A model generated the notes under the pieces. It had not been told where the DNA came from, made no database searches, and saw nothing but the letters and a program-made list of their open reading frames with translations. A program made the translations under genes and the position numbers. Below are positions 29,301 to 35,487 of a stretch of 64,000 bases of DNA, in pieces. The stretch covers positions 6,550,784-6,614,783 of the forward strand of contig CM121341.1 of assembly GCA_051530055.1 (NCBI GenBank). The letters are read 5' to 3'. Every line of letters starts with the position of its first letter. The stretch's first letter is position 1. Source of the stretch: Neoechinorhynchus agilis (taxonomy: Eukaryota > Animalia > Acanthocephala).

Positions 29301-30351
29301 TTACCGCTTGAGCACTCTGGTCTACCGAGAGAGTAGATGTGCTCGAGGAATGCGAACGGTAATGCAACTTCGAACACTAGTTGGTGATATAAACGAAGGT
29401 TAGAATCAACTTGTTAATTGTTAAAGATTTGAATAAATGGATATAGTCGCCAATAGCTTGGAAAGTAAGACAAAAAGCATCGCCCCACGGCTCGATGATT
29501 CAAAGCTGCGAGCCGAGCTCCGAGAGATCGGTTCCAAGGTTTTGTCGCCATTACGTAAAAATGTTATTTGAATAAATAATCCAGTTGTCGGACTCATTGA
29601 CGAGATCAAAGGAGATGTTTGAGCAAAACGAGATGCAGACACAAAAATGTTTGAAAGAAGAATACGATTGTAGATCTGAGTTATTGTCGATTTGTCTAAT
29701 AAGGTTAATACCGGGTGGTTGCGATATTTCTATTCAGGTAAATTCGTTAATGAAACGTACTTTTGAACAAGTTTCCCTCACAGATGGCTGCTCGAAAATT
29801 AATGATAAATATTGGGGAATTTTGTTCAAAGTCGAACAACCTAATTTACATTAGCTGGGAATTTATTGGAGCACTTGACGAGCTTTCTAATTGGCGATCG
29901 TCGGATCCAATGAGATTTATAGAAACAAAGGATAAAATTAGGGAGACGTTGTCTGAGATTATCTCAATAGTTAACACTGTAGAGGTTGAGTGCAGTAATG
30001 ACTACTATGTGAAGGTATATCTTGATCGCCCTTTTGTTTCTTCTTACAGATTTTAGAACATCTCGCTCCTGCGTTCAATGCTAGCTTCATTTTCAGCTCA
30101 ATTACAGACATTGATCATTATGCGAATATGTAGGCTTAATGATATGGGTTTGTACGGGGGTTGAATTTTTTAGTATCGATTTTCATACATCTTCAATAGT
30201 TGCCGTTATCGGAGATTACAAACAAGCCATGAGAACCTTGACTCACCATGCAGCGGATGTCGTGAGCGAGCTTATAGCCTGCTGCCGACGAGCATCACCT
30301 TATTGTGACGGTCAATCGACTCTAAAATGGAGAAAACATTGTAGAGAATAA
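26383..30351 (+). CDS. Divergent alpha-catenin/vinculin-family protein, many exons (5' end uncertain)
   Basis: Successive exons align by eye with the alpha-catenin M domain (KHAIEFCRV...IS...VVR; IEDIYPLVISAA; EEAIINDL...A..AR..AYRL..LV..E) and tail (AMRTLTHHAADVVSELIACCRRAS*). Confidence 0.7.
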
Positions 30352-30525
30352 ATATTGCCAAGACTGTAATTTTGCTGAAAAATTATAGCTTTAAGTTTTT
30401 ATTCGCGTTTATGCGGATTTAGAAATGTGTGAACTTCGTTGCTAAAATCCAAAATTCAGTTTCTACGGCAACTGGATCTGTATTAGAACCACGAATCGAT
30501 TTTCTCCAGCTTTGAGGTGCAAGGA

Positions 30526-31591
30526 ATGTACGCTGGTATGTGGGCCATATATTTTCTATCACTCGATTTCGTAAAAGCTATGGATATCAAAAGTTGCAAT
30601 GGACAACAGTTGAACGCCTACTTTGTAATAACAGTTCCAAAGAGTTCCTTGAATACAGCAGTAAGCATGGTAGCGAACATTGATTCGCAGTCATTAAACC
30701 GAAGGACTGTAAATCTTTGTCATAAGAAGACATCTTCAAGAATCTGGGTTACCGACCGGAAGTGGCCAACGAGTATCAATTTTATACCACAGCTCAACAT
30801 TTGACATTTTGCAAATGGATGGATATTTGGCCTATTTGAAGCTGACTGAATCGCTAGGCAAGATACTGAAATTCCTGGACGATTTGGAATTGTTCCACAA
30901 AGGACAAATACCTGATAATCCCGACATAAAATTTACCGGAAAACAATATAGTCAGCTGAATATATTAGCACTAATTCTTCAAGGAGGCGACTATAACAGT
31001 AAACATCACAATCTTTTCGTCTATATCAGCGAAGGTATTCCGACTGGTCTTCTCGTAGGCAATGAAGATTACAGTAGCAGACGAGATGTTTTTCTACGTA
31101 TTAATCAGAATAGTGATGGACGATCTGAATTTCATTGTGTGTTAGCTAATGGTTCGCACGTGGATCTGTGCATTATTTTGGGCATACCAATAGATAAACT
31201 TGATGTACCTGCGAAGATGATAGTAAAAAGTAGCAGAACTTTTGTTGAATTGCTAAATTTTCGAGAAGATCTCATCGATGTAGACCTAGAGACGCGGATG
31301 ATTCTTCGATACTACGATTCAAGAGTCAGTTCGCCTGATCAGCTCCTTCTGTTAAAACCAGAAGCATCACTACCTGAGAATCGAGAACAAATACCCATCC
31401 TGAGGCTTTGTGACAACTTAGCCGCAAATGTTTCCGATCGAAATTCTAGTGATTCTACCATTAGTGCTGATATGGCCTATGTTGCACCGTTATCCGTGGA
31501 CTTGCCGAAAAAAAGATACCCCGTTGTCATGTTTAACATTTTGATGGCTGTCATGTCCGTATTTACTTTATTTCTGCCTTATTGCATTTAA
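30526..31591 (+). CDS. Surface protein paralog A: signal peptide, degenerate vWA-like domain, C-terminal hydrophobic (GPI/TM) tail
   Basis: SCNGQQLNAYFVI, GQRVSILYHSS and FVYISEG resemble vWA strands without an intact MIDAS; hydrophobic C-terminus; frame change near 30690-30730 solvable by a 37-40 nt GT-AG intron. Confidence 0.55.
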
Positions 31592-32291
31592 ATGAAAGTA
31601 AAGTAAATTAGTTTTTCGCCGAGAAGAAGGTAGTTTTACTATTCGGTGTCAGAAGATTCCAAATGTTTAGTAGATTGGAGATTTACTAGTTTTATAAAGA
31701 AATATATTTCGGTCCGATGTGTGATTGGGCGCAGTCGGGCCAAGCACCGCATAATTTTTATTCAAGGTTAGAAAACGTTTGATCGCAACAACGAACGATA
31801 ATTCAGAAAGGGAATGCTGGATCCATCCTCGAAGCAATGGAGGATAAAGATGTTATTCCGTTCATATCGGAAATTTTATAAAATTTTAACCTGATAAAAT
31901 ACAAGCCTTGCGCATTTTGTCTTTGCCGGATATATTCTTGACCTTTTGTTGATTTTAATCGCCGCTTAACGTTATTGACAATACACCAAACGGTGGTCGT
32001 TATTTTTTAGGTTCTGTCGATCTTATACAAACGAATTTGAACAAATACATAAAATTTAAGGCTGCGAGCGCCTAATAGAATTGCCGATTGTGACCTTAAA
32101 AACTGGAAAAATAAAGCTTTATAATAAATCCAAAAAAAAGACGAAGGTTAATGCAGTTTTTCACAACATTTATAGACGATAAGATTTTAGGTATTCTGCC
32201 TATCAGTTACTATGGCGACTTGTTCTACTCATAATAAACTGAATATTCAAAGGTACGAATATTCAGTTTACATACTCGTTGTTCACTTTGA

Positions 32292-33692
32292 ATGTCGGTT
32301 CGTGGAGGCACTATCCAGCTCCAGATAGGCGGATGTGGTAATAGATTGGGATGCCAATATTGGTTGGCCTTATCCGAAGACCACAATATCAACATTGGAA
32401 ATGGTCTATACGATGGCAATAATAAAAGTGATGTCCTATTTGCTGATACAGCGTTCAATATAAACAAGTACGGTCAATATAGACCAAAGTGTATCCTAAT
32501 TGACAATGACAAATTGAGACTGGATGGAATATTGTCTGAAGCAGGACTTAAATCATTTTTCTGTGAAGACACAAAGGTTTTGGTCAAAGCGGACACACTG
32601 TGTTTGGATCGAGATTCTGCTGAAACTCAAATATCTATTGAGCCGATATTGGAGGTATTGAGAAAAGAATTGGAAATTAACGATTTTCCATGTGGACTTC
32701 AATTAGTTCATTCAGCGTCGGGGTCTTTTACTACCAAATGTGTCAATGCTCTATTACCAGAGATAAAGAATCATTATAATAAGAAGTTTATAATGAACGC
32801 CGTTGTCCTACCAGAAATAGAACCAGGCGGTATTGGTGGATGTAATTTTAGAATGATTCCATTGTTCGACTCACTAATTAATCATTCCGAAGGGTGTTTC
32901 CTCTACGACAACGGAGCACTCCAACTTGTTTGGCAGTCATTAAGATCCAGTGAGAATACACAATTAGATAACCTTAATCATTTGGCAGCCACTCATTTGG
33001 CAGGAATAACAGCCTCCCATCGACTTCCAGGTCCAATGAATCGATCCCTTCGCAATTTATTAAACGGAATAATCATGCTTACTGGAATGCACTTTTTCAT
33101 TCCTTCAATATCACCCATTAATTGTCTCACAGAGAAGATATGCTGCCAAGGAAATGTATTCGATTACACCAGACAATTATTTAAACTTGAAAACTCAATG
33201 CTCATCGCCAATAGGCATCCAAGTTTGATTAGGCACTATTCTGCAGCCGGTGTGTACCGTGGACCAGTTTCGCCGTTTGAAGCAAGACGCGAGCTAGAAA
33301 ATCTGATTGTGAAACGACCAGAGGTGTTCCCGGCTGAATCCGGATTCGCCTTTGAACACGCATTTGTTTCAAGTTCTGGAGATCATGGACCCTTGACTAT
33401 GACGGCTGCATTGAATTCCAATTCGTGCGCTGATCCCATTCAAAGGATAATTGAAACCTGTACTGTTAACGAAGGCAAAGTTTTGGCTAGGTATCTGGAA
33501 GCAAAAGACGAAACCGAAAAAGCAGAGTTTCAAAATCAGGAAAATAGTTTGAGAAACATTGTTGATCTTTATCAGAAGGATGCCCTGAGCATGTACGAAA
33601 GTGCAAAATCTGATGAAGGAAATACTAAGATTAAATTGAACAAAGTGGAAGAGTCTGATCAATATTTAGATTCTGACAATCTCGAACAGTAG
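32292..33692 (+). CDS. Highly divergent intronless tubulin (closest to beta by eye), lacking the GGGTGSG motif
   Basis: QIGGCGNRLG..YW..LS.DH.I, Y.PKCILID, GLQLVHS, DNGAL, LNHL..THLAGIT..HRLPG.MN..LR and MHFF align across the tubulin fold. Confidence 0.9.
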   Translation: MSVRGGTIQLQIGGCGNRLGCQYWLALSEDHNINIGNGLYDGNNKSDVLFADTAFNINKYGQYRPKCILIDNDKLRLDGILSEAGLKSFFCEDTKVLVKADTLCLDRDSAETQISIEPILEVLRKELEINDFPCGLQLVHSASGSFTTKCVNALLPEIKNHYNKKFIMNAVVLPEIEPGGIGGCNFRMIPLFDSLINHSEGCFLYDNGALQLVWQSLRSSENTQLDNLNHLAATHLAGITASHRLPGPMNRSLRNLLNGIIMLTGMHFFIPSISPINCLTEKICCQGNVFDYTRQLFKLENSMLIANRHPSLIRHYSAAGVYRGPVSPFEARRELENLIVKRPEVFPAESGFAFEHAFVSSSGDHGPLTMTAALNSNSCADPIQRIIETCTVNEGKVLARYLEAKDETEKAEFQNQENSLRNIVDLYQKDALSMYESAKSDEGNTKIKLNKVEESDQYLDSDNLEQ

Positions 33693-35487
33693 CGTGTTTT
33701 TAAATTAAAATGAATCTGCGTTTAAAGGAATTCATTTATATTGTTTTTCTTCGCGTACGATAAATAAAAAAATTCGCATAACTTCCGAACAACATTTTCA
33801 GTGATTCTGGCGAAAATGAGGACCACCGAATCATTTTACTTTCTGTGTTCTACATTTTTTGCCTTTGGCAATGCCGTTCGTGCGAGATTTTTGGCAAAAG
33901 TTTTAGTAATCTCGAACAGTAGCGTGCTTTTAAATTAAAATGAATCTGCGTTTAAAGGAATTCATTTATATTGTTTTTCTTCGCGTACGATAAATAAAAA
34001 AATTCGCATAACTTCGAACAACATTTTCAGTGATTCTGGCGAAAATGAGGACCACCGAATCATTTTACTTTCTGTGTTCTACATTTTTTGCCTTTGGCAA
34101 TGCCGTTCGTGCGAGATTTTTGGCAAAAGTTTTAGTAATCTCGAACAGTAGCGTGCTTTTAAATTAAAATGAATCTGCGTTTAAAGGAATTCATTTATAT
34201 TGTTTTTCTTCGCGTACGATAAATAAAAAAATTCGCATAACTCCGAACAACATTTTCAGTGATTCTGGCGAAAATGAGGACCACCGAATCATTTTACTTT
34301 CTGTGTTCTACATTTTTTGCCTTTGGCAATGCCGTTCGTGCGAGATTTTTGGCAAAAGTTTTAGTAATCTCGAACAGTAGCGTGCTTTTAAATTAAATGA
34401 ATCTGCGTTTAAAGGAATTCATTTATATTGTTTCTTCGCGTACGATAAATAAAAAAATTCGCATAACTTCGAACAACATTTTCAGTGATTCTGGCGAAAA
34501 TGAGGACCACCGAATCATTTTACTTTCTGTGTTCTACATTTTTTGCCTTTGGCAATGCCGTTCGTGCGAATTTTTGGCAAAAGTTTTAGTAATCTCGAAC
34601 AGTAGCGTGTTTTAAATTAAAATGAATCTGCGTTTAAAGGAATTCATTTATATTGTTTTTCTTCGCGTACGATAAATAAAAAAATTCGCATAACTCCGAA
34701 CAACATTTTCAGTGATTCTGGCGAAAATGAGGACCACCGAATCATTTTACTTTCTGTGTTCTACATTTTTTGCCTTTGGCAATGCCGTTCGTGCGAGATT
34801 TTTGGCAAAAGTTTTAGTAATCTCGAACAGTAGCGTGCTTTTAAATTAAAATGAATCTGCGTTTAAAGGAATTCATTTATATTGTTTTTCTTCGCGTACG
34901 ATAAATAAAAAAATTCGCATAACTCGAACAACATTTTCAGTGATTCTGGCGAAAATGAGGACACGAATCATTTTACTTTCTGTGTTCTACATTTTTGCCT
35001 TTGGCATGCGTTCGTGCGAGATTTTTGGCAAAAGTTTTAGTAATCTCGAACAGTAGCGTGTTTTAAATTAAAATGAATCTGCGTTTAAAGGAATTCATTT
35101 ATATTGTTTTTCTTCGCGTACGATAAATAAAAAAATTCGCATAATCGAACAACATTTTCAGTGATTCTGGCGAAAATGAGGACACGAATCATTTTACTTT
35201 CTGTTTTTTTTTGCCTTTGGCAATGCCGTTCGTGCGAGATTTTTGGCAAAAGTTTTAGTAATCTCGAACAGTAGCGTGTTTTAAATTAAAATGAATCTGC
35301 GTTTAAAGGAATTCATTTATATTGTTTTTCTTCGCGTACGATAAATAAAAAAATTCGCATAACTCCGAACAACATTTTCAGTGATTCTGGCGAAAATGAG
35401 GACCACCGAATCATTTTACTTTCTGTGTTCTACATTTTTTGCCTTTGGCAATGCCGTTCGTGCGAGATTTTTGGCAAAAGTTTTAGT
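33679..35487. repeat. Tandem array, about 229-bp unit, 8 copies, comprising the tubulin stop codon and 3' flank
   Basis: ATCTCGAACAGTAG at 33679, 33909, 34138, 34367, 34592, 34820, 35043 and 35261; units differ mainly by small indels. Confidence 0.97.

Follow-up and report, generated by a model that had tools for sequence, protein, structure and literature searches.

What defines the tubulin/FtsZ superfamily biochemically is that GTP is bound by way of the glycine-rich T4 loop. In ordinary tubulins, the T4 cradle of glycines, together with loops T3 and T5 and a stacking tyrosine, holds the phosphates, the Mg and the ribose of the nucleotide. Misato/DML1 proteins are the known degenerate relatives of tubulin, members of the superfamily with an eroded GTP-binding region. 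Septin pseudoGTPases offer an analogy, being cytoskeletal GTPase paralogs with a degenerate pocket that serve as structural subunits of hetero-oligomers (Hussain et al., 2023; PMC10731463). The same review explicitly contrasts septins with tubulins on the pseudo-GTPase point (PMC10731463). In the literature, we found no description of a tubulin lacking the signature, of a tubulin pseudo-GTPase or of the gene family reported below.

Neoechinorhynchus agilis (Acanthocephala) is a parasite of fish. We analyzed a window of 64,000 nt of its genome (assembly GCA_051530055.1, contig CM121341.1, positions 6,550,784 to 6,614,783 of the forward strand; genome paper PMC12690905), and coordinates of the gene under study, L001, and of its neighbors are window positions. 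L001 resembles Misato/DML1 in being a superfamily member with an eroded GTP-binding region. Unlike them, it has the full Tubulin plus Tubulin_C architecture, groups with beta-tubulins and does not match Misato segment II. Septins differ from it by their unrelated fold.

Gene structure and transcription

L001 is an ORF of 466 aa on the plus strand (32292..33692, stop codon included), with an ATG start and zero internal stops. It was annotated as the CDS of a divergent beta-like tubulin from the ORF itself, Pfam, PDB alignment, AlphaFold2 (AF2) and Foldseek. As originally predicted, the ORF is full-length and intact: the stop-free frame carries both tubulin Pfam domains and can be aligned end to end with PDB beta-tubulin chains, from residue 8 to residue 454.

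Four public runs from one study each contain every sampled word of the L001 ORF, and their contigs were placed on window positions 29900-35800. In 4/4 runs, one collinear contig covers the gene from 32267 (32275 in X4) to 33696-33726, with 0 mismatches to the genome and 0 joints. These contigs define a monoexonic mRNA (32267..33726, +) with a 5' UTR of about 25 nt and a 3' UTR of 4-34 nt, in agreement with the expected lack of introns. A variant polyadenylation signal, ATTAAA (33704..33709, +), precedes the contig ends at 33720-33726 by 11-17 nt. Coverage of the flanks (31870-32263 and 33840-35800) is zero in the 4 runs, and in the upstream gene the contigs splice two GT..AG introns of 42 and 52 nt. 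The classification of the runs as RNA is itself a program's guess, but since introns are spliced and intergenic DNA is uncovered, they behave as RNA; contig depths are unfit for ranking expression. The N. agilis transcriptome paper contains no discussion of tubulin genes, and the supplement examined has no tubulin entry.

The lack of introns had been taken to suggest retroposition. In the same genome, however, the canonical beta genes (L004, L005/L006 and L007) and alpha genes (L009, L011 and L012) likewise each consist of one uninterrupted ORF, and no genomic poly(A) tract or A-run was found after 33726. Retroposition is therefore unsupported; an ancient event could have lost its hallmarks at such divergence.

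Two observations concern the neighboring sequence. Within the upstream gene, 52 nt (30670-30723) are skipped by the contigs of 2/4 runs. The skipped stretch ends in TA..CA, with no GT-AG in any register, and folds no better than shuffles (z = -1.7); the other two introns of this gene (30012/30055 and 30146/30199) are GT..AG. The skip may represent RNA-level excision or an insertion polymorphism between worms. Just upstream of L001, a 260-aa ORF (30809-31591) without a Pfam match is covered by RNA contigs that contain odd joints of 177 and 206 nt (CT..TC and CG..TT) with short anchors, and these joints may be assembly artefacts.

Fold and relationship to beta-tubulin

Pfam analysis of L001 returned Tubulin (PF00091; 5.9e-16, 59.7 bits, gathering cut-off 33) and Tubulin_C (PF03953; 4.6e-6, 27.2 bits, gathering cut-off 26.6). 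Both scores exceed the gathering values, as expected of a tubulin/FtsZ superfamily member, and nothing else of weight was matched. Against all PDB chains, the best match had an E of 7.9e-36 with about 24% identity over aa 8-454; 171 chains matched, and among the matches listed all 60 of 60 were beta chains.

AF2 was run on a 68-sequence tubulin alignment, so the prediction was guided by that alignment. It produced a tubulin fold with a pLDDT of 88.2 and a pTM of 0.89, weak at residues 101-110 (the T3 equivalent, pLDDT 54) and 444-466 (pLDDT below 50). When this model was submitted to Foldseek, the best PDB matches were tubulin chains of microtubule and tubulin-complex entries, deposited beta included (E 2e-33, TM 0.81/0.88). 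Core elements H3, S4, S6, H7 and S7 are 55-62% identical to beta. According to the model, L001 keeps the whole tubulin fold; the structure prediction proposed for this gene thus yielded a confident tubulin fold for the monomer. The C-terminal tail (aa 437-466; 33600..33689, +) is predicted to be disordered from AF2 pLDDT and sequence. It had been described as acidic, which stands in a mild form (net charge of about -4 over the last 30 aa), but an E-hook is absent.

We compared L001 with canonical beta-tubulin (L004, KAL7677069.1, from the same genome; PDB 6s8m_B). The two share both Pfam domains, length, predicted fold and an end-to-end alignment, and both lack the S9-S10 insertion of alpha. 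Cys12, Ser138, Asp203-Asn204, Asn226 and the T7 Asn (beta numbering) are kept in L001. Unlike canonical beta, L001 is without the MREI start, Tyr222 and the E-hook, its T3, T4 and T5 loops are rewritten, its VEWIPNN is replaced and its M-loop is only 13% identical, at an overall identity of about 24%. L004 itself falls into a cluster of at least 90% identity that includes vertebrate beta-4 tubulins, so the divergence of L001 does not reflect a genome-wide decay.

In blastp, L001 scored 125-130 bits with beta, 82-99 with gamma, 57-86 with alpha and 75 with an epsilon-like protein (P0111). A HMMER profile of the L001 family (A2) was scored exhaustively against 1.84 billion representatives. Only three N. 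agilis proteins exceeded 680 bits and the next match reached 184 bits; the matches below it are ordinary beta-tubulins, and the best non-self matches carry beta hallmarks. With nothing between 680 and 184 bits, no ortholog outside the N. agilis genome was found among these representatives. A word-based search likewise found no outside relative, only the paralog, and a JGI metagenome scan found no relative of the family. L001 thus appears to be a lineage-specific gene, with no orthologs in the searched libraries.

We built an IQ-TREE tree (LG+C20 PMSF) from 38 tubulins. In it, L001, L002 and L003 of N. agilis cluster together (100/100) within the beta group (90/93), separate from the clades of gamma (100/100) and of alpha (100/98). 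The family stem measures 1.29 changes per site and the path between L001 and L002 0.59, consistent with rapid initial change and later constraint. An AU test did not reject a grouping of the family with the alpha-tubulin clade (p = 0.236), which leaves the class assignment to depend on scores and branch support. The alpha alternative may have gained from the inclusion of L021, a long-branched alpha-like protein, in the constrained group. FastTree grouped the family with L021. We treated this as long-branch attraction, since the site-heterogeneous tree separates them. Taken with these limits, the scores and branch support make it likely, though not proven, that the L001 family descends from beta-tubulin.

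The nucleotide pocket is rewritten

We aligned L001 with the beta, alpha and other tubulins of the same genome (alignment A1) and compared it with beta site by site. Of 17 beta positions in contact with GTP, Mg or ribose, about 12 are replaced non-conservatively in the family. The changes are Q11 to G (Gly14 in L001), Q15 to R (Arg18 in L001), N99 to R/V, G140 to S/T, G142 to S/A/K, T143 to F, G144 to T, G146 to K/R/N, D177 to G/S, E181 to C/G/K, N184 to R/G and Y222 to L/M. The beta residues C12, N14, S138, G141, D203-N204, N226 and the T7 Asn are kept. T7 of L001 is half conserved, with Asn250 retained and Asp249 changed to Ser; Lys252 has become Asn (Asn255). L001 therefore shows neither of two beta-class hallmarks, the MREI N-terminus and the Lys252 opposite the N-site.

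The motif losses read from the sequence in the original prediction were all confirmed. L001 begins with MSVRGG and not with MREI. In the T1 loop (aa 13-20, GGCGNRLG; 32328..32351, +; alignment and residue table), GQCGN has become GGCGN (aa 13-17). The T3 motif GAGNNWAKG, with the NNWAKGHY region, is replaced and shortened by a gapped, unrelated loop (aa 100-112; 32589..32627, +; alignment, regional identity and residue table), with loss of the gamma-phosphate Asn. In the T4 "tubulin signature" loop (32709..32738, +; alignment and residue table), HSLGGGTGSG has given way to HSASGSFTTK (aa 140-149), reported earlier as HSASGSFTT. Just one glycine is left in T4, and the stretch S-G-S-F-T-T-K (aa 143-149) departs from the signature [SAG]-G-G-T-G-[SA]-G. 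In T5 (aa 174-187; 32811..32852, +; regional identity and residue table), the equivalents of Asp177 and Glu181, which contact the ribose and phosphate, are replaced, and identity to beta is 0% over a 10-residue window (beta 172-181). Overall, T3, T4 and T5 are 0-14% identical to beta.

We then tabulated about 90 full-length tubulins (400-520 aa), drawn from the 150 library tubulins nearest to the L001 family. Nearly all have a T4 of the xGGxGSG type, and most keep EPYN in T5. The nearest proteins after ordinary beta are divergent beta-like tubulins from Naegleria gruberi (D2VY59), Stentor coeruleus (OMJ71007.1), Anaeramoeba and the wasp Prorops nasuta (XP_066594709.1). Some of them share GGCGNRIG in T1 with L001. 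Unlike L001, they have a glycine-rich T4 (IGGSGSG, GGGCGAG, GGATGGG) and usually EPYN in T5, and in the tree they branch apart from the N. agilis clade. The loss seen in L001 is unusual even among aberrant tubulins and exceeds chance drift.

Two paralogs share the new residues

The same genome encodes two intact paralogs, L002 (ACOME3_000888, 592 aa, 62% identity to L001) and L003 (KAL7677207.1, 415 aa, 36%). NCBI annotates the family members as hypothetical proteins. The rewritten T1, T3 and T4 of L001 recur in both paralogs, as does its H10-S9 motif. L002 differs from L001 by a C-terminal extension of about 150 aa rich in Lys, Glu and Ser, and L003 is without most of H11-H12.

Across the three proteins, all 8/8 residues of T1 are invariant, as are His140, Ser141, Gly144, Phe146 and Thr147. 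The replacements Gly14, Arg18, Phe146 and Thr147 are common to all three, and three-way identity in T4 reaches 43%, versus 26% overall. Because these new residues are common to the three paralogs, rewriting of the pocket preceded the diversification of the family, and the result has been maintained.

Conservation of new sequence extends beyond the pocket. The H10-S9 segment of L001 (aa 346-360; 33327..33371, +; regional identity and invariant family columns) is 7% identical to beta but 57% three-way identical within the family. Here a motif of the SGFxFEHAxVS type, conserved within the family, stands in place of VEWIPNN on the minus-end longitudinal face. Judged from the alignment, both longitudinal contact faces are remodelled, one of them into this new motif.

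Predicted function and alternative explanations

The T4 cradle, T3, T5 and the stacking tyrosine are replaced by bulkier residues, including the invariant Phe146-Thr147, which suggests that L001 has lost GTP binding. The protein would most likely be incapable of canonical GTP binding or hydrolysis and, if so, would take no part in GTP-driven dynamic instability. Since the canonical pocket is lost and both longitudinal faces are rewritten, we propose that it is probably a nucleotide-independent structural or regulatory subunit with a tubulin fold. Possible partners would be its two paralogs, an alpha-like protein that has degenerated in a similar manner, or something else, and not the ordinary microtubule lattice. 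On balance, we consider it somewhat probable that L001 is a functional, lineage-specific, beta-derived tubulin with a rewritten pocket, likely making no canonical use of GTP and serving as a nucleotide-independent subunit.

A single-exon gene without its signature motifs could also be a decaying retro-pseudogene, still open by chance and transcribed as noise. Saturation of synonymous sites in all pairs, even those of canonical beta genes, made a numeric dN/dS unobtainable, and we used pS/pN and a simulation of ORF survival in its place. Between L001 and L002, pS (0.78, saturated) is far above pN (0.22), values indistinguishable from those of the canonical beta pair L006/L007 (pS 0.82, pN 0.20). 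When the 477 observed substitutions were placed at random under neutrality, 0/20,000 simulations kept the L001 frame open. Three intact paralogs with the same new residues, a discrete transcript in 4/4 runs with its ATTAAA signal, and a genome in which intronless tubulin CDSs are normal and no poly(A) relic follows the gene also argue against decay. L001 is a working gene, transcribed and under purifying selection, and not a pseudogene, a reading that we regard as extremely unlikely. The paralog-fixed replacements, the transcript and the excess of pS over pN all support the earlier proposal of a real, functional tubulin-family gene without the canonical pocket. It is also very unlikely that L001 is a fast-evolving parasite's divergent version of a known minor class (delta, epsilon, zeta or Misato/DML1). 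The branch is long, one alternative placement survives the AU test and the tree was built without a named delta or zeta reference. However, neither Misato (PF10644) nor Tubulin_3 (PF14881) matched L001 at E<=1, which sets it apart from Misato, and the best non-self matches were ordinary beta-tubulins in a search containing all classes. The epsilon-like protein scores well below beta, and in the tree the family belongs to the beta group and is separate from the epsilon-like row.

Other readings accept the gene as functional. Several features speak against a dead site. Not only is T1 invariant, but the residues that contact the base in canonical tubulin (Cys15, Asp206-Asn207 and Asn229 in L001) are invariant too, and the new basic residues Arg18, Arg107, Lys149 and Arg187 cluster at the expected phosphate site. 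Arg/Lys occupies four canonical contact positions in L001 and L002, and Lys two different pocket positions in L003; the new T4 is itself conserved. A non-canonical nucleotide or anion would be compatible with these features, and we hold it possible, though doubtful, that the rewritten pocket binds a guanine nucleotide, or else some other acidic or phosphate-bearing ligand, through the new Arg/Lys. With the same reserve, these side chains might replace the backbone amides of the glycine loop, probably without hydrolysis, giving a permanently liganded tubulin. Against this, a single glycine survives in the phosphate-cradling loop, which now contains Phe and Thr; the model shows T3 as deleted or disordered; and all three paralogs have lost both Asp177, which contacts the ribose, and the stacking Tyr222. 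Of the two roles originally suggested, a lattice cap and a stage-specific cytoskeleton, the first would have L001 act on ordinary microtubules as a cap or poison, its minus-end face pairing with canonical alpha-tubulin; such a protein would block growth by a nucleotide-free plus-end face or would sequester alpha-tubulin. Its origin from beta-tubulin, the half-conserved T7 with Asn250 and the 55-62% identity of H3, H7, S4 and S7 to beta are in line with this idea. We nevertheless judge both the cap itself and these modes of action quite unlikely, as the minus-end face is remodelled (VEWIPNN replaced, T7 Asp249 to Ser, and Lys252 to Asn) and the M-loop has diverged from beta.

If L001 is indeed a nucleotide-independent subunit, a folded, expressed and selected tubulin without the T4 loop would mean that the fold can be stable and usable without the canonical nucleotide. 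L001 would then serve as a natural test case for the contribution of the nucleotide to tubulin folding and assembly, and the pseudo-GTPase concept, known for Ras-like GTPases and septins, would extend to tubulins. For acanthocephalan biology, it would point to a lineage-specific cytoskeletal element. The three beta-like genes and at least one alpha-like gene so far carry only the label of hypothetical proteins.

Other divergent tubulins of the genome

The alpha-like gene is L021 (KAL7668880.1, "hypothetical protein"), an intact 439-aa ORF (1489-2805, +; match at G000:C3, 4544311-4545177). It falls inside the alpha clade (100/98) and is without the T4 glycine loop (AKAMSGS), T3 and the T7 catalytic region. 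As a co-degenerate alpha-like protein beside the beta-like family, it could form an orthogonal pair with it. A complex prediction of L001 (aa 1-440) with L021 scored 0.69, versus 0.52 for the control with chain 1 replaced, which gives no verdict either way. It is conceivable, but unlikely, that L001, L002 and L003 pair with L021 in a second, nucleotide-free tubulin system, a GTP-independent polymer or scaffold parallel to microtubules.

Another long-branched, beta-like tubulin of 430 aa is encoded by L008 (KAL7668766.1; 1039-2328, -; G000:C3:4142030-4142845). Its T1 reads GYAGN and its T4 is partly degenerate (SGGCGGG), and it may represent an intermediate state of pocket erosion.

We also observed a tandem pair of divergent tubulins 12 kb apart on the minus strand (L015 and L014; G000:C1:2804355-2804582 and 2791977-2792204). 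Their T1 is GEAGNRIG and their T4 is AAGGCGAG, and both are split by an intron or a frame change. L014 is damaged, with an internal deletion and stop codons in its second exon. Finally, gamma-tubulin is present twice, about 39 kb apart (L023 and L024; G000:C2:12433339-12433740 and 12394250-12394651). The matched ORFs of the C-terminal exon are identical over the first 70 residues shown, and both genes contain introns, unlike most alpha and beta genes of this genome.
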